Positions 124 through 64,000 of a stretch of 64,000 nt of DNA are shown here, one piece after another (the stretch's first letter is position 1; each line of letters begins with the position of its first letter). This DNA comes from Andalucia godoyi And28 (Eukaryota; Protista; Jakobida): positions 1-64,000 of the forward strand of contig VRVR01000009.1 of the NCBI GenBank assembly GCA_009859145.1, given 5' to 3'. The position numbers and the translations under genes were made by a program. Under the pieces are notes generated by a model, which searched no databases, was not told the DNA's origin, and saw only the letters and a list, made by a program, of their open reading frames with translations.

Positions 124-1650
124 CTAGCATAGCTGGGACATGACCTGGAGTAGCGAGGACTGGCTGCCAGAGGTTCCTGGAGTGACGTCCCCGTGAACAT
201 CCCACATCAGCATTCCTCCCAGAGACTGCGACTGCACGTAGCTCACGTAGCTCTGGACAAGCGATGCATCAGCGTACGAGACAAATGCCTGCGAGTATGA
301 CGCCTGGGTGCCCGCGGGTGTCCACTGTCCGTCGTGATACGCCCACACCCCCGAGACCACGCCGCCGTCGTACCACTCGTGCTGCACAAACGTGCCTGCG
401 GCAACGAGCTGCGCGAGGTATGCGTACGTGAAGGATCCCGAGCATGCGATGCCCGACCGCGGATCCGTGGAGCACGACGGCTCGTCCTGGTTGCCCTGCG
501 CCACGCCCGCGAACTTCTCAAAGAGACCAAAGTTCGATCCGGCGGCAACCCCGGTCAGCATGCGGCCGTACGCCGGCACTCCCACGACGATCTTCTGCGA
601 CGGCACTCCCATCCCCAAGAGCGACTGCACGGACTGCTGGACGGAAAAGTCCGGGTTGTACGGCGATGCCGCGTCGGCCGTCAGGCTCGTGAGGTAGCCG
701 GTTGCCCCGACGGGTCCCGAGGCGTCGAACCCGCCATGAAAGTCGTAGGTCATCAGGTCGATGAAATCTGCATTCGCGGACAGGATTTTCCAGTTGTCGG
801 CTCCGACGGTCTGCAGCCAGGACGGGCCCGAGAGTACGGCGAGCGAGATGATGTACCGGCTGCCGATCGCACTGCGCACCTTGGCGACCAACGCCGCGTA
901 CTGCGATGCGAGATCGGGGGTCATGGACACCGGCTCAAAGTCAAGATCGATGCCATCCATCGCTGTTTTGTCCAGGATCAGCTTGACGGTCGATGCGAAC
1001 CTGTCGGGGTTCCGGAACGCACTGAGAAATGACGCGTCGTGTGCATATCCACCAACGGAGATCAGCTTTTTGAGAGTGCCCTTGGAATTCTGGAGACCCA
1101 TGAAGGCCTGGAAGTTTCCGCGGCCCCAGGCGGCTGGCGTCTGGGCAGTGCTGCAGATTGCCGAGTCCACCGTGCAGAGACCAGATGCGCCGAACAGAGC
1201 GTCGTAGTTTGCAAACGACTGGGCCACCCGAAGATCCGCGTTCGGATCGTTGAAGTACGTCGTGCCGTCCTGACCCACCTGCAGGAACGCATATGCAAGC
1301 GCATTCATGTGTTCGAGCTTCGCAGTCAGATCGGCGTTCGCAGCCACGGACCCGTCAGCGTTGATGGATCCAGGGAGCGGGTACGGCTGCGTGGGAACAG
1401 GCGTCGATGCGTAGATGGACCAGTCTGTCCAGTAGCTCATCACAAAGTGTCCGTTTGCTGCGGCTGGTGCGCTGCTGCCAGCGGAGGATGCGCGGGCAGG
1501 GCGGGACGAGTGCACGGAGCCCAGGTGTCGAGACGGAGACACATGCGCTGCATCTGCAAACAGCAGCACGTTTGACGTGCAGCACACGCACACGCACACG
1601 CACACCACAAAGGCCACGCTCCAAGCTGTGTTGGACCGTGCAGCCATCAT
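124..1650 (-). CDS. Secreted GH18 chitinase, bacterial-like, GC-rich
   Basis: 508-aa ORF with ATG and TAG. It has a hydrophobic N-terminal signal, the GH18 catalytic motif DGIDLDFE (DxxDxDxE), ISVGG, LMTYDFHG, GVPAYGR and a C-terminal GGMLMWDV. Confidence 0.92.
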   Translation of the reverse strand: MMAARSNTAWSVAFVVCVCVCVCCTSNVLLFADAAHVSPSRHLGSVHSSRPARASSAGSSAPAAANGHFVMSYWTDWSIYASTPVPTQPYPLPGSINADGSVAANADLTAKLEHMNALAYAFLQVGQDGTTYFNDPNADLRVAQSFANYDALFGASGLCTVDSAICSTAQTPAAWGRGNFQAFMGLQNSKGTLKKLISVGGYAHDASFLSAFRNPDRFASTVKLILDKTAMDGIDLDFEPVSMTPDLASQYAALVAKVRSAIGSRYIISLAVLSGPSWLQTVGADNWKILSANADFIDLMTYDFHGGFDASGPVGATGYLTSLTADAASPYNPDFSVQQSVQSLLGMGVPSQKIVVGVPAYGRMLTGVAAGSNFGLFEKFAGVAQGNQDEPSCSTDPRSGIACSGSFTYAYLAQLVAAGTFVQHEWYDGGVVSGVWAYHDGQWTPAGTQASYSQAFVSYADASLVQSYVSYVQSQSLGGMLMWDVHGDVTPGTSGSQSSLLQVMSQLC

Positions 1651-2558
1651 TCTGTCCTTGCTGGTGTTTTCGGTATATAACCCCGGTGTATTCGGTACTT
1701 TTTCTTGCAGTAAAGAAGCCTGCTGATGCTGGTGTCAAGTGAAAACAGGATCTGATAGTTCTCGGTGGAAATGAAGCAAACATCTGCAGGGCCACCACGC
1801 ATACGCAGAGGAGGAGTTATATACTGTGAGCGAGGGATTCGCACTTCGCGACTCGCGACCGAATACGGAACAAGATGGTTGATGGCGATGACTGCGCGCG
1901 TTTGTTCCTTTTTTGAGGAAACCCCCTGTAAAGACGGATGATTCCCTCTAAAGCTGCTTGAGCGCACTCGCACAACCCCCACGGTTTCTCGGATGGTAGG
2001 ATGCGCAGACGATGCACACGCGATGCGCGCAGTGATTCGCACTCCTTGTGACGGTACCCGATTTTGTATCTGAAAATCCTCAAGAAAGACACTCTCGGAG
2101 GTAGAATTTCCAAAAAAAAATAAATAATAATAATAACAAGACTGATTTTTACTGGGAAGGGGAGGACACAGCATCACTGTGCACTGTCCATCGTGTCCTC
2201 TCCGCCATCATCATCAGGAACAGTTTGCTCATCCCGAACATAGTCCACGCCCTCGATGGAAAGATCTTCCGGGATGTGCCGGCATGCACAGCCCCCATCG
2301 ACATAAGTACCAGCAGCAAAGGGAGCAGAAGCGGAAGTTGGAAGCGGGTGCAGGAGACGGGATTGAGAAAAGGAAATTTTAATTTTAAAAAATAAAGACA
2401 TAAAAACGGGAAAACGGAGCAAATCTCGAATTGTCGGAATTCAATTGGTATGGAAGCGTCCTTCTGAACAAACCACAAAGAGTGCCTGAAGTCGTCATCC
2501 CGTCGTTGCATGGGCAACAGCGAAAGCGACTAAGAAGGTGTTTGAAAGACAGCACCAG

Positions 2559-4085
2559 CTATCTTTTCAATTTGTGCTTTTTAAGAACTGCTCCAAGGGT
2601 TTCCTTGTGCACAGGCTTGCATAAAAAGTCGTCCATTCCAACTTCAAAACACCTTTTTCGAGTCTCATACAGCACATCCGCGGTGACAGCAATGATCGGT
2701 ATATGATGAGTTTCAGAGATCAGTTTTTCTTCCTGGCGAATCTTCGTTGTCGCTTCAAAACCGTCCATCTCGGGCATGAAGCAATCCATCAAAATCGCAG
2801 AGTACTTCTCCGGAGAATCCGTGAAGAGCTGAAGAGCCTCGCTTCCGTCACATGCAACATCGTATTCCCATTCGAGCTTGGAGAGATGCTTCGCAAGAAC
2901 ACGAGCGTTCAGCGGATTGTCTTCTGCAATAAGGGCACACGCGGGCAGCTCAATCACGACTGTTGGAGAGTCGACAGAAGTTGGATCATGGTATCCCGCG
3001 CCCGTATCGATGTGCACAGATAAAGTCATATTGTGAATTCCATCATTTTGAATTGCCATCAGAGTATCTTCCAGCGGCTTGCATGCCAGCGGCTTAAAAA
3101 TAGTGTAAGTCTTACACATCTTCAGCGCATCAGAAAAACGACCGACCTTTTCAAACATTCCCGCAGCCACGGCACCCACGCGCAGGATGGATTCGTCGAA
3201 TCGAGCCTCGACAAGCGGAAGAAGATCCTCCGAAAATGAAATTCCGTCACTGAAGGCATTTCCACTGCCGCTCTTGCTTGAGAGCGATTTCGACGACGAT
3301 GTTGCATTCGAAGACACAGAGCCAAGAGAAGGTGACGCGATGCTGGAAGCAGCATACGATGATGAGGACGAGCTTTCCGAATCCGTAAATGATGCACAGC
3401 TGTCTTGCATACTCCCCAGTGCTCCGGAGTTGTTCTCTCGGTCTGCTATCTTCGACGTATGTTGCGACCGGATGCGAACAACGTAACTGTTTCTCCATGC
3501 GGATTCTTTCACTATCTGCAAACACTGTAATGTTTCTGACATGGACTGAAGGTCATGACAGAGACTCTCGTCTTCCAAGAGGATCAGGTACTTCCGTTCA
3601 TACTGAAGCCGGTTCCGCAGCGACGGCAGGCCAATGCATTGAAACACTTCAAACCCAAGGAATCGCAGCACCCATGCTATGGTGTCGAAAAATGATCCCG
3701 CAAGCACCAAAACTATAGGATAGTTTCCGCGGAGCCATCCAATCTTGTTGTGGAGCACAAGATAGTCATCTCGCAACGTGCGCACAGGTTTTCCAACAGG
3801 CAAGCGCAGCGGTATGCGGATAATGAACTCGGAGCCGGCTCCAATCGAGCTGTCAACGACGATGCTGCCATTCATTCGGTCGATGGTCTGTTTGCAGAGC
3901 GCGAGTCCCAAGCACGATCCGCCTCGCTTCCGCTTCGACACATCCGCGTCATTTGGGAACAGCGGGATTCCGTATACTTGATGGCGCTCCGAAGAACGTT
4001 CATCAATACTTGACTGAGACACTGCACATCAGAAAGTATGGCAACCGTCGGAATATGAGCACGAGGGGTCGACAACGTCGTACAT
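2559..4085 (-). pseudogene. 5'-truncated, frameshifted hybrid histidine kinase (degenerate HATPase, degenerate receiver, intact C-terminal receiver)
   Basis: The N-box-like SDVQCLSQVLMNVLRSAIKYT is in one frame (ORF 3872..4075). GIPLFP..GGSCLGLALCK..MNGSIVVDSSIGAGSEF is in another (ORF 2559..4022), with the junction near 3971. No HisKA or sensor domain fits upstream. The receiver is intact (ALIAEDNPLN, LMDCFMPEMDG, TAD, FLCKP). First in-frame ATG is at 3875. Confidence 0.7.
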
Positions 4086-11798: not shown

Positions 11799-12671
11799 TT
11801 TGCAATTATTTTTATTATTATTATTATCATCATCATCATTATCATTACTTTTTTCTGTTTATACTGTTGTTCTACTTCTTCGAATCAAAACACGATTCGG
11901 ACAAATAAATTCAACAAAAGACCAAGACGAAAGCCAAAAGAAAAAGAAAAAGAAGAGAAAGGGGGAACGGAGGAGGTGGCGGGAAAAAAGGAACAATCAC
12001 CCGCGTTTGACTTCATAAGCGCCGTTCTATTTGCTCGTGGTTTTCGAGCTATCCCCATAACTTGCGGAAAGACGACAGCAACCTGCAGGTCCAAGGCACC
12101 ATGTGCCTCTCCTTGCGGATCTTCGACAACAGGAACGCACCTTGGACACGAGCAAGCTAGCACACAACAAGCTACGCTCGTCGTGCAGCCCTTTCGGCTT
12201 ATGCGTGTCCGGCGACTTTCTCAGGAGCAGTGGAAAGGCAAAGCAACGAGCGCACAGCTGCGTCGTCGTATGTGGCTCCTTCGGAGATGGCATCAAACTC
12301 GGGCTAAATGATGCTGTGCCACAACTCGGAATTTAAAGGGATCCAGACCTGATGGTTTTCGTACTTGTGGGTGTTCGCGGAATTTTTGGCGCCAGAATCG
12401 ACGTCCAAAATCCCTCCTGCCCCCCCCGATCCCTTTCCGATTTTCCCGCGTGTTTGCGCGTTTCTTGCTCGTGAATGTTGGAAAACACAACCGAGTTCTC
12501 ACATTTTCTTCTTTTTCTCTTTTTCTTTTCGGTTTCTTCTCCATCCTTCTTGCCACGTTTACATTTCGTATTTTTTCTTCTCCCTTTTCTGTATTGCAAG
12601 AATTGCATTTAATTCGTCCGTCTTGGCTCCAATCCTTTTTCCACCGTTGAAGAGTTATCCGGTTTTTGCAA

Positions 12672-17873: not shown

Positions 17874-19661
17874 ATGAGCCAAATGTGGGAGTATCGCAAG
17901 AAGTTCAATGATCTGAAGAATTCGATCATGAATGTTCCTGACGCCGAAGCCAAAGTCAAGGAGGCCACATCCAACGAGAAATGGGGAGCCTCATCGACTT
18001 TGATGCAGGAGATTGCAGAGTACACACATTCTTATGATGACTATCGTGTTGTTATGGACACATTGTGGAAGAGAATGGACGCTCCGGGCAAGCAGTGGCG
18101 ACATGTCTACAAGGCTCTTACGTTGTTGGAGTATCTCTTGAAAAACGGCTCGGACCGTGTCATTGACGACGCAAAGTCGCGCGTCTACATGATCGAGACG
18201 CTTGAGCGCTTCGATTTTGTGGATGAAAAAGGAAAAGACGAAGGACGCAACGTTCGTGAAAAGGCAAAGCGACTCGCAAAACTTCTCAAAGACGAATCTG
18301 CAATCAAGGAAGAGCGACAGAATGCGTCCAAGAACCGAGGTAAATATACGGGATACTCGAATGATGGAGGAAGCGGAGGTGCGTACGATCGACCTATGGG
18401 ATCCTCGACTGCGTCCTATGGAAGACCACGTGCGCCGTCAAACGGTGACGACGAAGGCAACTCGTATCGCTCGCAGTCTTATGCTCGCGAAGACCAGAAC
18501 GAGGAGGAGGTGGAGGAGGAACATGAGCCACCTGCTCCAGTCAAGAAGTTGATGTCCACTGCACCAGCTGCTGCAAAGGCAACTTCGACTGCGACCCCAG
18601 TTCGAAAGACCGGTGCAAATTCCCAGGCTCATGCTCCGGCTTCTGCGTCTGGCTCCAAGTCCGGGACTGCAGATCTCTTTGGATTTTCCTCATCTTCTAA
18701 CGATCCGTTTGCAGCATCTAGTTCTGCCGGTAACAGTTCGGGATTCGGTGCGTCAAATGATTTTCTTTTTGGCTCTGCTCCTGCTCCTGCTCCTGTTCCG
18801 AAAGCACCTGCACAGAATGTGGACCCATTTGGAGGTCCCTTGTCCTCTGCGCCATCTTCAAAGCCCATCTCTGTGCAAGACCTTTTTGCTCCGACAGATC
18901 CATCCGTTCCGTTGATGCCTGCGGCTTCGATGGCGCAGCCGCAGCCCATGGGAATGCCCGGAATGGCCCCAATGGGAATGCCGGGTATGGCCCCGATGGG
19001 TATGGGAATGCCAGGAATGGCCCCAATGGGTATGCCTATGATGATGCCCATGGGTGGTATGCCGGGAATGGCTCCGATGGGGATGGGGATGCCGGGAATG
19101 GCTCCGATGGCCATGGCTTCGCGGCCTATGCCGCCTGCGCAGCCTGCTCCTGCAGCAAACAAGGGAGGCTTTGATGGTTTTGGTGACTTTGAATCCGCAA
19201 AACCAGCACCCAGCGCAGCGGGTGTTAAGAAATCTCAGAATCCGAATGAAGTTGAACGCAACTTGGTCAACTTGGACTCGCTGTCCTTGACTGGCGGCGC
19301 GAAAAGTGCGTCATCATCATCAACATCTGCGTCGTCGAATCAGGGTTCGCGTGTGTCGATGAATTCCATGGGAGGCTCTTCTACTGCCGCTCCAGCTGCC
19401 GCCCCGCAAGGCATGGGAATGCAGCCGATGGGTATGGGCATGCAACCGATGGGTATGGGAATGCAACCGATGGGTATGGGAATGCAGCCGATGGGTATGG
19501 GCATGCAGCCGATGGGTATGGGAATGCAGCCGATGGGTATGGGAATGCAGCCGATGGGTATGGGCATGCAACCGATGGGTATGGGCATGCAGCCGATGGG
19601 TATGGGAATGCAGCAGCAGCAGCAGCAGCAACCAAACCGATCAAACGATCCGTTTTTCTAG
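17874..19661 (+). CDS. ENTH-domain protein (epsin/EpsinR-like clathrin adaptor)
   Basis: KVKEATSNEKWGAS, WRHVYKALTLLEYLLKNGS and DEGRNVREKAK form the ENTH domain. The tail has DLF/DPF motifs and Met-Gly-Pro-rich repeats. Confidence 0.92.
   Translation: MSQMWEYRKKFNDLKNSIMNVPDAEAKVKEATSNEKWGASSTLMQEIAEYTHSYDDYRVVMDTLWKRMDAPGKQWRHVYKALTLLEYLLKNGSDRVIDDAKSRVYMIETLERFDFVDEKGKDEGRNVREKAKRLAKLLKDESAIKEERQNASKNRGKYTGYSNDGGSGGAYDRPMGSSTASYGRPRAPSNGDDEGNSYRSQSYAREDQNEEEVEEEHEPPAPVKKLMSTAPAAAKATSTATPVRKTGANSQAHAPASASGSKSGTADLFGFSSSSNDPFAASSSAGNSSGFGASNDFLFGSAPAPAPVPKAPAQNVDPFGGPLSSAPSSKPISVQDLFAPTDPSVPLMPAASMAQPQPMGMPGMAPMGMPGMAPMGMGMPGMAPMGMPMMMPMGGMPGMAPMGMGMPGMAPMAMASRPMPPAQPAPAANKGGFDGFGDFESAKPAPSAAGVKKSQNPNEVERNLVNLDSLSLTGGAKSASSSSTSASSNQGSRVSMNSMGGSSTAAPAAAPQGMGMQPMGMGMQPMGMGMQPMGMGMQPMGMGMQPMGMGMQPMGMGMQPMGMGMQPMGMGMQPMGMGMQQQQQQQPNRSNDPFF
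19413..19613 (+). repeat. Coding 21-nt tandem repeat (MGMGMQP, about 9.5 copies) in the epsin tail
   Basis: Unit ATGGGTATGGG(A/C)ATGCA(A/G)CCG; variation is only at synonymous third positions. Confidence 0.95.
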
Positions 19662-36562: not shown

Positions 36563-37306
36563 CCCCTCAAGATCTCGTCGCGCAGGCCCGAAGCTTCCTC
36601 TTTCTACTCTGCGTACACTCTCTCTCTGTTTCTCCGACCCTTCAAATACCACAATACATGTTCATACAAAAACATAATAATAGAACAGCAGTTTTCCTAT
36701 TATTTTATTTTCCTCAAAAAAACCCGATTATTGTCCGATGTCGGAACTCGAAGCGGGCTATTTCTTCTAGAAGCCTCATGTTCTGGCAACGTAGGCTCAA
36801 ATGCTCGACCGTGCCCACGGCCTTACAACAGGCTGCGGTCCTGGAGACCACATGTCGAAACGAGCCACACGTCTATATTGTACACTAACCACGGATAATC
36901 ATCGCTGACCACCCATAATCGATGTTGCAACCCAACAACATGCATAGCATAATTGGGAAGGAGGTAGGCCCCAACAAGCCCCTCGGCATGAGCGACGTTC
37001 CCAAGATAGATGTTGCATTGCATGGACAGTAACAATAAAAATAAAGAAATGAAATGAGCGTCGCTGTGCGAGAATGCAACGCGGCGGTGTGTGTATAGGG
37101 TTTTCATGATCAAAATGGGGGCGAAACGAATCGGGCATCGTGTGACGGAGTTGTCAAGATTACCAACGCATGCGCATGGCGAGTGACAGTGTTTTTGTGC
37201 TTTGCGTGCGCTTCGCGAGTGGTGGAGGCACAATATATATATATATATGTGTGTGTGTGTCGCTTTCTGGTTTGGTTGGATGTTTGTGAGTCCCTTTATG
37301 TCTGTC

Positions 37307-37308
<2 letters not shown>

Positions 37309-37400
<92 letters not shown>
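37309..37400 (+). repeat. (TG)46 microsatellite immediately after the LST8 stop codon
   Basis: Read directly from the sequence; 92 nt. Confidence 0.95.
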
Positions 37401-40958: not shown

Positions 40959-41727
40959 GTTTTTTTCTTCTTCTTTTTCCCCTGGCCTCCTTCCGCTTCT
41001 TTCTCTGTGCGTTGGGACTCTGAATGTGAGCTACAGATGTGGGGAAGAAGATAAAAGAGAAGAAAAATTAACTGAAAAAAAATAAATAGAAAGATGGAAT
41101 TGCGCAATGCAGCGACCTCCTTTGTTGACTTGAATATCAGAAGAAACTGAGAGGAAAATGGGACTAATGGGCTAATGCTCACTTGAACAACAAACAGAGT
41201 GGACAGCAGAATCGACAACTCGAAGAGAAAGCGTGTACGACCGTTTTTCAAACTGGGAATGGGGGTAAAATGAAAAAGTAGGATGCCTACATTGTAAACT
41301 AATCGTGCATAATCGGTCTTGCGTCCAACGGGTAGTGAGAGATCCGGTGCGGAAGAATCGAACGCGTCCAGCGGTGGTGCAGATGTCATACGTCTTGCGC
41401 ACAGCAGACGGGTGAAGAAACATTCATAAGCCTAGAAAAAGAGAAGTTTAATTTTCGATTTTACATATTAAAACAAAAAACTTGAACAACGATGTCTACA
41501 GATGGATAGCGAAAGAGCGATTCACGGAGAGAGATTCTGAATTTTGTGGAGCTGGATGGAAGCAGGGGCTATTCGTTTGACAATACTCTTGGTTCAGATT
41601 GCGATGACAATTTTGCTCACGCATACGTCGAGGTTGTTGAACCAAGTGCTGCGCTTCATAATCAACGGCTGTCTGGAAACAGTCCGTCGATCGATCGATC
41701 GAGATGGCAAGGAGCAGAAGCTTGGGC

Positions 41728-60471: not shown

Positions 60472-60570
60472 TTTCTCCTTTTCAATCCGTATCTATCCCA
60501 AAAAAAGATGACTTCTTTTTTTCTGTTCTTCTTTTCCTTTTTCCCAAACTAAAACTTAAAAGAGACAGAG

Positions 60571-60610
60571 GAAACCAAAGGAAACCAAAGGAAACCAATG
60601 GAAACCAAAC
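60571..60610 (+). repeat. 10-nt tandem repeat GAAACCAA(A/T)(G/C) x4 upstream of eIF2-gamma
   Basis: gaaaccaaag gaaaccaaag gaaaccaatg gaaaccaaac. Confidence 0.85.
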
Positions 60611-61341: not shown

Positions 61342-61650
61342 AATATACACTCAATTCAAGTCAATCCACTAAATACAATAATAATGTTGATAAAGAGGAA
61401 AGATGAAAAAGATGAAAAAGACGCACGGAAGCAGAGGCAACTGAAACCGCTGAATAATGACACGTCATTGTCATGCATACGGAAATATACTGTTTCACAG
61501 GAATTCGTGCTTACGCACGCTCGGCCAAAATTCAGCCTGCGAACACAGGCTCCGCATTTTCGACACTCTTTAACGCAGCATCCATAGCCATCTATTCTAT
61601 CATTCGTTGGTTTCACTCTTTTATTCAAATATGGGCGTGAGTGTGCTGGG

Positions 61651-61946
61651 ATGACGCATTCGCCTACGCCGCTCGATACAGGGCCTCCTAGGTCCCGCAG
61701 ACCTCCTAAGAGACCACGTGTCACTACACCTACTGCTAGGGCCGTCAGGATCAAAATGCACCCTTCTCAGGAACAACGTGCCACGCTGAGAAAGTGGCTC
61801 ACCGATTGATCGAGATTGGGAACGGAGCGCGGAACATTTATCTGAAGAGCGCCGTGAGGCGTGTTGGCGGCCTATCCCCTTCCCGGCAACGGGATGCAAG
61901 ACTGGGTATGCATGTCCATTCGTATATATGCATGTTCAGTATATAA
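61651..61946 (+). pseudogene. TnpB/Fanzor nuclease remnant: NLS-like leader + HTH fused to RuvC-III tail, core deleted
   Basis: ATG 61651: MTHSPTPLDTGPPRSRRPPKRPRVTTPTARAVRIKMHPSQEQRATLRKWLTD* (stop 61807-61809). IDRDW follows at 61805-61819 in a second frame, then one extra G (61820), then NGARNIYLKSAVRRVGGLSP...* at 61821-61946 in the third frame. Confidence 0.8.
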
Positions 61947-62033
61947 TGTAGGCGTATGTCTAGCGGGCGACACCGGTACTCTTCGGCGTCCGTTTTACAG
62001 CCGTCCTCATCATGGGTGAAAAAGCGACCTAGG
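61860..62033 (+). ncRNA. Putative omegaRNA (reRNA/fRNA) scaffold overlapping the 3' end of the TnpB/Fanzor remnant
   Basis: Stems found by eye: tcccg-GCAA-cggga (61881-61894); 13-bp actgggtatgcat/atgcatgttcagt (61901-61913/61928-61940); gcctat/gtaggc (61870-75/61948-53); gcgggcg+ccgg/tcgg+cgtccgt (61963-61993); long-range ggcggc/gccgtc (61866-71/62000-05). The position matches known TnpB/Fanzor RNAs. Confidence 0.55.
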
Positions 62034-62224
62034 AAACTGGCACGCACGATGTACTGCTTTGTGAGATTTATATAATAAACACATTCCAGTGCATGTGCAT
62101 CATCATGTAAATCAAGCGGAGAGAAATAAGGAGGAAAACATACAGACAATGCACAACACAGGCAGCGAGGTAGCGACAGAAAATACAATTTAAAAAAGAA
62201 ACACAAACGAGAAACGGGAAGAAA

Positions 62225-64000
62225 TCAGCGACGATTCGACACAACACGTTTCCAATCCTGGACTCTATCTTGATTCTCTGGAGGATAGTCATCGTAGCCT
62301 CGCAGAGTTGACGATGACTGTTGCCGACTGGCGGGCCCGTTTTGCCTCTGGAATGGCGGAGATCTTCCTTGTGATAGGGAACTTCTCGATGGCCGGCCAA
62401 AGCCCGTCGCATTCTCAGAATCCATTCTGCCATTTACCCCGTAGAAGGAATCCGAACCATGCCACTCCTGACCAGTCTCTCGTCCAAAGCCACTGTCTGG
62501 TCTTCTTGTGGCCTGTGAACCTTGTTTGAAAGAGCGCGCATTGTGATGTCCACTTCTGTACATTTGCAGAGACGCCTCTCCACCAACGGACTCAGACGAC
62601 TTTGCAAAATGTGGTCCATCCAGCGAATCAGCCTTTTTGGTACGATCCTTTTTTCGTCTGCTAGTATCTTCCTCTCCGCCCTCGTCATCATCCGCAGCGT
62701 CAAAAACGCTGGTGGAATGCACAAAACCCGGCGGTGTCGGTCCGCGGACCTTCGATTTACTTTCGAACGGCCCGAACTTGGCTCTGGCTTGATCCATCTC
62801 CGGAATCGACATGTGGGACCACAGCACCACAAACTGTCGGTACACATCGTTAATTGCCTCATCCTCTCGCTCGGCAGGACAGCTGTCCATGCTACAATAG
62901 ACCACATCTCGAATCTTGAACTGCAGGCGTGCCAAAAAACTGTGGTCCACGGTTTGCTTGATGAGCAGCGGTTTCGCAATATTCCACGATCGACAGTACT
63001 GCTCTGCTAATTCGCACCAATAGAGCATTGCCTTAGATGCGGTGGAACCGGCGGCAGTTGATCCGGAAGTCGACGACGATGAAGGGGCTGGAATCGGAAT
63101 TGGAATCGGAATTGGAATTGGAATCGCAGCAGAGCCGGGGACTGCAGCAGAGTGTGAGCTTGTCGAAGAACTCCGATGCATCTGTAATGGATTCGTTTGG
63201 TCATTGGATGCAGCCACCACGGTCTCTCGACGATCAATGCCGTCGATGAACATGTTTGACGGTCGCTGTAACGCCGTTGAAGACAATCGTCGAGGAGAGC
63301 CAGGTGAAGGCCGCACAGGAGACCGAGGAGGAGACCGTTCAGGAGACCGGGGAAGCGAATGCGATCTTCGACGGTAAAGAGACGGCTCGTAGTCTCCGTA
63401 CGACGTCAATTCCCATGATTTTGCAGCGAAACTTCCATCTCTTCGGTACGATGGACCAGAACGACGACGGTCTCGATCATGGTCTGCGTACGCGTATGCA
63501 GATACCCCATCCTCTCGGGAGCCTGCATTGGCAGGTGCGCGGTTTCCGCCACTCGGCATGTCGTCCGACCTTGTAGTGAACGGTTGGTGCAATGAACTTC
63601 GCGGACGATCCATCTGCGGCGCATCACTGTGGTGGGATCGGTTTCGCGCACTGGACGCAGACTTCGTTTCCGATGCGGAAACCTCAGAGCCGTATCCATA
63701 CTGGACTATGGAAGGTGCCGGTGGTCCGGGCTGTTTCGGATAGCCTTGTCGCGCTGGAGAGGGGGAGAGGGACGGGGACGGGGACGGGGACGGAGAAGGG
63801 GACGGAGAAGGGGCTGGAGACGAAGATTTGAAGGGATGGCTGGTGCCAGACAGTGACAAGTTCGAATTCACTTGAATAGGGGTCGACGGAGAACGACTCG
63901 AGACCGGAACTTCCTGCAGTGCTGTTGATTTGGCTGATTTCCAAGAAAACCCCATTGGATCCGCAGGCAAGGTCCGTGATAGCGTTGCCGATCGACCACC
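62225..64000 (-). CDS. Hypothetical low-complexity Ser/Pro/Arg-rich protein, 5' end outside the window
   Basis: The frame is open from the window edge (64000) to the stop at 62225. One small globular-looking segment (MLYWCELAEQYC...FVVLWSHM); no family recognised. Confidence 0.7.
   Translation of the reverse strand, partial: GGRSATLSRTLPADPMGFSWKSAKSTALQEVPVSSRSPSTPIQVNSNLSLSGTSHPFKSSSPAPSPSPSPSPSPSPSLSPSPARQGYPKQPGPPAPSIVQYGYGSEVSASETKSASSARNRSHHSDAPQMDRPRSSLHQPFTTRSDDMPSGGNRAPANAGSREDGVSAYAYADHDRDRRRSGPSYRRDGSFAAKSWELTSYGDYEPSLYRRRSHSLPRSPERSPPRSPVRPSPGSPRRLSSTALQRPSNMFIDGIDRRETVVAASNDQTNPLQMHRSSSTSSHSAAVPGSAAIPIPIPIPIPIPAPSSSSTSGSTAAGSTASKAMLYWCELAEQYCRSWNIAKPLLIKQTVDHSFLARLQFKIRDVVYCSMDSCPAEREDEAINDVYRQFVVLWSHMSIPEMDQARAKFGPFESKSKVRGPTPPGFVHSTSVFDAADDDEGGEEDTSRRKKDRTKKADSLDGPHFAKSSESVGGEASLQMYRSGHHNARSFKQGSQATRRPDSGFGRETGQEWHGSDSFYGVNGRMDSENATGFGRPSRSSLSQGRSPPFQRQNGPASRQQSSSTLRGYDDYPPENQDRVQDWKRVVSNRR

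Follow-up and report, generated by a model that had tools for sequence, protein, structure and literature searches.

Genomic Context of the Locus

The DNA analyzed here, referred to as the window throughout, comprises 64,000 nucleotides and corresponds to VRVR01000009.1:1-64000, part of a nuclear scaffold of Andalucia godoyi with a length of 423,762 bp (GCA_009859145.1). Window coordinates and record coordinates are equal, and the window therefore begins at the scaffold end. Nuclear genes were recognized along its length, including those for DNA polymerase alpha, APC2, CFAP74, ValRS, Cmc1, and RNase MRP RNA. Seven ORFs of the window correspond exactly to EukProt or NCBI entries. The element described below is adjoined by the Cmc1 gene and lies in the spacer between this gene and the next one. 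All coordinates of the features are collected in Table 1.

The genome of A. godoyi is about 20 Mb in size, gene-dense, and mostly without introns (Gray et al. 2020, PMC7050145). Subtelomeric scaffolds, consisting mainly of transposon- and virus-like sequence, are omitted from its assembly (PMC7050145).

Several other properties of the window were recorded. The RNase MRP RNA gene was located at 12001-12303 on the minus strand, between APC2 and DNA polymerase alpha (RF00030, 70.8 bits, E 1.2e-17). The first 2 kb were richer in G+C, with a value of 0.589 vs about 0.50 elsewhere. Dinucleotide and other short-unit microsatellites were frequent and often ran through open reading frames (37310-37400, 63075-63120, 63789-63818, and 17874-19661); examples are (TG)n beside relic 2, IPIPIP and SPSPSP in a 581-aa ORF, and PMGMGMQ in an epsin-like gene. 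A 10-nt tandem repeat, CAAAGGAAAC, was present in about 4 copies at 60566-60605, directly upstream of the eIF2-gamma gene.

Table 1. Fanzor2/TnpB-related features of the window, with coordinates and strand.
Feature	Position	Strand	Description
Fanzor2/TnpB relic	61651-61955	+	First ~50 codons and last ~30 codons, followed by ~70 nt of noncoding tail
N-terminal coding remnant	61651-61800	+	50 intact codons, start codon to ...LRKWL; aligns with P0044 residues 24-59
Basic, NLS-like cluster of the leader, PPRSRRPPKRPRV	61684-61722	+	P0044 counterpart at the equivalent place is PRKRKEKKNGH
HTH_OrfB_IS605 start ARAVRIKMHPSQEQRATLRKWL	61735-61800	+	Pfam match; first half of the domain only
Internal deletion junction	61801-61808	+	Frame shifts +1; ~1 kb absent relative to P0044
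C-terminal coding remnant	61805-61887	+	IDRDW, extra G, NGARNIYLKSAVRRVG, extra base at ~61869, AYPLPG; RuvC-III DRD and family C-terminal tail
3' tail and right end	61888-61955	+	Closes with the terminal motif TCAGTATATAATGTAGGCGT (61936-61955)
Subterminal hairpin, ~20 bp	61899-61942	+	61899-61918 pairs with 61923-61942; RNAalifold consensus
Relic 2, 3' module only	36869-37020	-	~150 nt, starting at ...NIYL... and closing with the terminal motif; more decayed; found by blastn with L002
Relic 3, terminal ~40 nt of the right end	41283-41326	-	3' hairpin arm and terminal motif; nhmmer E 6e-4

Structure of the Relic

The relic was compared with P0044, a protein of 437 aa encoded on the JGI metagenome contig L002. 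This protein was reached through a scan of viral contigs, which yielded a TnpB on contig L001; the latter was used as a query and gave 258 relatives, among which P0044 matched the window far better than the others.

The first-pass annotation had described peptides spread over three plus-strand frames, and all of them were present where it had placed them. The ORF at 61651-61809 on the plus strand consists of 52 codons, MTHSPTPLDTGPPRSRRPPKRPRVTTPTARAVRIKMHPSQEQRATLRKWLTD*. Its last codons are overlapped by IDRDW (61805-61819), which is read in the next frame. One extra G at about 61820 shifts the reading to the third frame, in which NGARNIYLKSAVRRVG is encoded at 61821-61868. A one-base insertion at about 61869 restores the first frame, and AYPLPGNGMQDW follows at 61870-61905. 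Thus, the single extra G noted at first was found as described, and a second insertion had been overlooked.

The transition from one coding part to the other takes place within about 8 nt, and the sequence of the junction is TGGCTCACCGATTGATCG. The RuvC-III motif DRDxN(G/A)AxNI is preserved at the C-terminus as IDRDW and NGARNI, split by the extra G. The basic leader reported at the N-terminus was likewise recovered, both in the relic and in P0044, and its role as a nuclear localization signal is predicted.

Missing from the relic are residues ~61-397 of P0044, equivalent to about 1 kb. As judged by P0044, the deleted stretch comprised the WED/REC region, RuvC-I (DPG, D226), the RuvC-II glutamate, and the C4 zinc finger. 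Neither the RuvC-I aspartate, which falls inside the deleted ~1 kb, nor the RuvC-II glutamate and the [TS][TS]xxC C4 zinc finger are present in the relic. No core fragments were detected anywhere in the window, either by the family HMM or by tblastn with P0044. Since the catalytic core is gone, the relic is incapable of nuclease activity.

Two additional relics of the same family, which had escaped the first reading, were found in the window (relics 2 and 3 in Table 1). For relic 2, an nhmmer E-value of 9e-39 was obtained, which is not an independent value, as relic 2 was among the 3 sequences in the model. Insertions and numerous substitutions have accumulated in this copy. No related sequence was detected upstream of either relic 2 or relic 3; both are devoid of the N part and of the junction and represent 5' truncations of different lengths. 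The terminal motif was common to all three relics, and all three lie in intergenic spacers.

Homology to TnpB and Fanzor Proteins

Profile searches, nucleotide alignment, and comparison with a single intact protein were used for assignment of the relic. In Pfam, the only match of the N peptide was HTH_OrfB_IS605 (E 0.13, profile positions 4-24 of 47), and the only match of the C peptide was Cas12f1-like_TNB (E 0.087, profile positions 47-60 of 60), both below the curated thresholds. Each peptide thus matched, at sub-threshold level, the family that the first-pass annotation had predicted for it, and did so at the predicted positions of the profile. The match of the C peptide in PHROGs was a transposase family.

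A family HMM was built from 120 relatives and run on the 2068 six-frame segments of the window. The two highest-ranking of these were the N and C segments, which are adjacent and correctly ordered (E 0.0019 and 0.26, respectively; the next segment, 0.47). When P0044 was used in tblastn against the window, the N and C parts alone gave matches, with E-values of 2.9e-5 and 4.8e-4.

At the nucleotide level, 61804-61887 of the window matched positions 1599-1680 of L002 in 73 of 84 bases, i.e., 87% (blastn, E 3e-22). The alignment contained only two gaps of one base each, and both sit exactly at the frameshifts. At the protein level, 15 of 20 residues were identical to P0044 in the N-terminal helix-turn-helix (residues 3-22 of ARAVRIKMHPSQEQRATLRKWL), and 24 of 27 at the C-terminus. 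In the N part, PRSRRPPKRPRVTTPTARAVRIKMHPSQEQRATLRKWL of the window is aligned with PRKRKEKKNGH--PPAESAVRVKMYPTAEQRITLRKWL of P0044, and in the C part, IDRDWNGARNIYLKSAVRRVGAYPLPG is aligned with MDRDWNGARNIYLKNAERRVGAYPLPG. The tail RRVGAYPLPG of P0044 has its counterpart in the relic only when the second frameshift is taken into account.

Searches with the peptides alone were negative. The joined, frame-corrected peptide gave no candidate with enough common words among 5.8 billion proteins, and the 52-aa N-terminal ORF gave 0 matches at E <= 0.001 among 1.84 billion representatives. Such null results in huge libraries were expected because the queries are so short. The NCBIfam search gave no match either. 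Kinase matches of the joined peptide in the PDB (phmmer) were taken as chance.

A fortuitous likeness between short peptides, or contamination of the assembly, would agree with the single peptides remaining under the Pfam thresholds and with their absence from the results of the large single-peptide searches. Such an explanation is opposed by the 84-nt alignment at 87% identity to an intact homologue, with its gaps exactly at the frameshifts, by the match of both ends to one protein in the right order, and by the first two ranks of the N and C segments among 2068. Contamination is further opposed by the position of the locus within a 423-kb scaffold amid host genes and by the two further relics on the same scaffold. 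The probability of either cause was considered practically negligible. The assignment made at first, a TnpB/Fanzor remnant in which the HTH start is joined to RuvC-III and the core is gone, was therefore borne out by the P0044 alignments, the family HMM, and Pfam alike.

The Nearest Intact Relative

P0044 gave matches to all three TnpB domains of Pfam, with E-values of 3e-17 for TNB and 2.7e-10 for HTH, and with OrfB_IS605 below the cutoff. Its best relative of solved structure was the mimivirus TnpB-like protein L79, a Fanzor2 (PDB 9b0l, E 3.6e-26), and the alignment of the two extended from the HTH through DPG to DRD. The motifs of P0044 were located at residues 226 (DPG), 367-377 (EEYTTKTCGKC), 392 (CPQC), and 400 (DRD); a glutamate adjoins TTKTC.

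Family members from Lipomyces yeasts, as well as a protein bearing the name of mimivirus R104, were 42-47% identical to P0044, and a cyanobacterial TnpB was 35% identical. The nearest relatives of the relic are thus Fanzor2-type proteins of eukaryotes and giant viruses. DPG has been described as the RuvC-I signature of the Fanzor/pro-Fanzor clade, together with an alternative glutamate (Yoon et al., PMC10711439). N-terminal leaders that are disordered or act as NLS are known for Fanzor2 proteins (PMC10530073, PMC10432273).

On account of DPG, the likeness to L79, the identity to the Lipomyces and R104 proteins, and the leader, the lineage of P0044 and the relic was filed as probably Fanzor2-type; the filing follows motifs and nearest known proteins, and the clade signature is read in P0044, as the RuvC-I region of the relic is deleted.

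Among 5.8 billion proteins, a set to which the A. godoyi proteome belongs, P0044 had no relative with more than 55% identity. A metagenome scan with P0044 gave 23 loci, none above 56% identity; therefore, there are no close copies of P0044 among them. The claim that this protist hosts or hosted an intact family was accordingly upheld in its second half, with three relics as evidence that the family was once hosted, and found no support in its first half, as no intact copy was recovered from the proteins searched.

The surroundings of P0044 on L002 (2481-11458) show about 50% G+C, ORFs that are apparently intron-free, and dipeptide repeats. Genes in this stretch include those for a NACHT/AAA-like P-loop protein and an FkbM-type methyltransferase. 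No viral hallmark genes were found on L002, and, apart from the element itself, no genes or orthologues in common with the window.

3' Module and Right End of the Element

Homology between the window and L002 continues about 40 nt past the stop codon of P0044 and halts at ...AATGTAGGCGT, which corresponds to position 61955 of the window. About 50 noncoding bases were thereby added to the remnant as it had first been delimited. In four sequences, namely the three relics of the window and L002, homology ends at ...GGCGT, and since all four diverge from the same base, this position is taken as the right end of the element. The terminal motif TYAGTNTANAATRTAGRCRT occurred 3 times in the window vs 0 expected, a count that has to be read with the pattern having been derived from these same copies. 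The right-end motif was not found in viral contigs.

No homology to L002 was detected upstream of the start codon of the relic. The ends of the element had been reported as kept; with no left end recognizable, this statement was limited to the ends of the gene and the right end.

The subterminal hairpin listed in Table 1 was paired in 91.7% of cells in 3 long, related copies, compared with 23-38% in slid controls. Four pairs were changed on both sides among these 3 related sequences. Several pairs are G-U, which are workable on sense RNA only; for this reason, the hairpin is more simply explained as part of a guide-RNA scaffold than as a feature of a MITE-like element.

A 14-nt pair at 61467-61480 and 61906-61919 was considered as a terminal inverted repeat. 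Nothing similar occurs in L002, and the pair was rejected because one of its arms is the palindromic ATGCAT core of the hairpin.

It was evident that the two coding parts had diverged from P0044 in different ways. The N part agreed with P0044 in 37 of 60 bases (62%) and in 75% of residues, and 14 of 20 third codon positions differed. In the C part, with the frameshifts removed, 71 of 81 bases agreed (88%), and 8 of 27 third codon positions differed. This third-position difference between the N and C parts was statistically significant (Fisher p 0.0085). The pattern suggests selection at the protein level in the N part and constraint at the nucleotide level in the 3' module. Such a difference would arise because the 3' end was doubly coding, carrying a presumed guide RNA in addition to the protein.

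IS607-type TnpB systems have an reRNA of about 150 nt, part of which coincides with the element's 3' end (PMC10711439). By analogy, the region 61888-61955 is a candidate for the 3' part of an omegaRNA/reRNA scaffold. The Rfam search gave no match of the 3' module to a guide-RNA family, and the predicted fold of 61800-62060 (261 nt) was no better than that of shuffled sequences (z -1.32). Two sub-threshold Rfam miRNA matches located 3' of the relic (62185-62331) were read as chance.

Origin of the Relic and Alternative Explanations

The region 61651-61955 is best explained as a defunct Fanzor2-type (TnpB-like) mobile element with an internal deletion, residing in the nuclear genome of A. godoyi, with an estimated probability of roughly 93%. 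Three relics in 64 kb, together with the protein-level selection suggested for the N part, support the view that the host lineage once carried the family.

The ancestor of the relic would have been an active RNA-guided endonuclease of the nucleus, comparable to P0044 or NlovFz2. Its protein may have entered the nucleus by means of the basic leader and would have bound an RNA of about 150 nt transcribed from the 3' portion of its gene together with the right end. The nuclease would then have cut DNA matching the sequence just past the right end. The present copy presumably has no activity of its own, having been left by deletion and decay after insertion.

The relic had also been proposed to be a non-autonomous derivative, i.e., a MITE-like deletion product that keeps both ends and depends, or once depended, on an intact element elsewhere in the genome for mobilization in trans. 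The deletion did spare the right end and both extremities of the gene, the family is multi-copy here, with 3 relics in 64 kb, and a source copy could hide in the omitted subtelomeric scaffolds (PMC7050145). However, neither the N part nor the same junction was found in any other copy in the 64-kb window and the 7 kb beyond it (71 kb), no left end is recognizable against L002, and no transposase remnant lies nearby. The further decay of this copy and the plain 5' truncations of varied length seen in the other relics suit random decay better. This explanation was therefore regarded as unlikely.

In a second alternative, the 3' modules of about 150 nt (the relic ending at 61955 and 37020-36869) are orphan omegaRNA genes that serve an intact Fanzor2 of the host in trans. 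Both longer relics are approximately as long as the TnpB/IS607 reRNA scaffold (~150 nt, PMC10711439), and the hairpin still pairs in both, including the G-U pairs that hold on the sense strand only. Yet no intact Fanzor2 of this lineage is present among the annotated proteins of the host, relic 2 bears insertions and many substitutions, and relic 3 is only 40 nt long. The conservation between copies may descend from an active ancestor, in which case no present function is needed. Orphan guide genes were accordingly judged highly improbable.

A related and very unlikely scenario is that A. godoyi or a close relative possesses an active, compact (~440 aa), TnpA-less Fanzor2 that uses the 3' modules as guides directed to their own flanks. 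Were this the case, the scattered relics would belong to a functional homing or regulatory system instead of being debris. The active lineage would then possibly reside in the omitted subtelomeric scaffolds with their transposon- and virus-like content.

Comparison with Known Systems

The relic is an ordinary decayed remnant of a mobile element of a known family and does not represent a new kind of system. Its likeness to Fanzor2 proteins (mimivirus L79/ApmFNuc, NlovFz2, and MmeFz2) consists in a basic or disordered leader followed by HTH_OrfB_IS605, in a C-terminus with DRDxNGARNI, in the DPG RuvC-I and the TTKTC with the C4 zinc finger of P0044, and in the location in a eukaryotic nuclear genome. 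In contrast to these proteins, the window copy is frameshifted and without the catalytic core, and is thus a relic and not a Fanzor protein. Differences are also seen in size, as P0044 has 437 aa vs 520 aa for L79, and no neighboring serine recombinase was seen.

Non-autonomous derivatives of IS200/IS605 (PATE/MITE-like) and TnpB-only elements resemble the relic in having lost the core and kept a terminal sequence and a subterminal hairpin. Unlike PATE/MITE-like derivatives, the relic is without a demonstrated copy number, a common junction, or a left end.

The relic extends the eukaryotic host range of Fanzor2 elements to the jakobids; no paper tying Andalucia or jakobids to Fanzor or TnpB was found in the literature. 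The host is of interest because of its very small, gene-dense genome and its use as a reference organism for the early evolution of eukaryotes. The relic itself is functionless, and the wider family is well known. Fanzors are widespread, with 3,655 proteins in 22,497 assemblies (PMC10530073), and a discoban Fanzor2, NlovFz2 of Naegleria lovaniensis, has already been characterized biochemically (PMC10432273).

P0044 is an intact, compact, probably Fanzor2-type protein with an NLS-like leader and could be considered as a candidate small genome editor; its comparison with the relics also yields a defined right end. The conservation at the protein level only in the 5' part and at the nucleotide level in the 3' part would mean that the constraint imposed by a guide RNA is visible even in dead copies.

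IS607 TnpB elements such as ISXfa1 and ISvMimi consist of a TnpA serine recombinase, TnpB, and reRNA. Features held in common with them are the lack of terminal inverted repeats and of target duplications, and a conserved 3' module of about 150 nt, as in the reRNA of ISXfa1 (PMC10711439). A complete IS607-type pair, consisting of serine recombinase and TnpB, is present in a more distant relative on the giant-virus contig L001. The TnpB of this contig ends in VDRDWNGARNIYLKS / VDRDWNGARNIYLKSFL / DRDWNGARNIYLKSFL, and its RuvC-III motif is identical to that of P0044 and of the relic. The element had been called IS607-like in the first-pass annotation; this part was not sustained, as neither an intact nor a decayed serine-recombinase (TnpA) gene was detected in the window, on contig L002, or next to P0123, a family member from a soil metagenome. 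In further contrast to IS607 elements, neither a dinucleotide crossover site nor a left end was identified. The IS607 link would rest on the more distant L001.

Two gene neighborhoods of relatives were also noted. In the giant-virus MAG to which L001 belongs, the recombinase ORF (1383-1988) overlaps, in another frame, the TnpB-bearing ORF (1369-3054), the pair being recorded at 1383-3054. P0123 (L027, 164-4721) is flanked by a zf-MYND protein and a protein kinase, without a recombinase, and these surroundings suggest that solo copies of the subfamily reside in eukaryotes or giant viruses.
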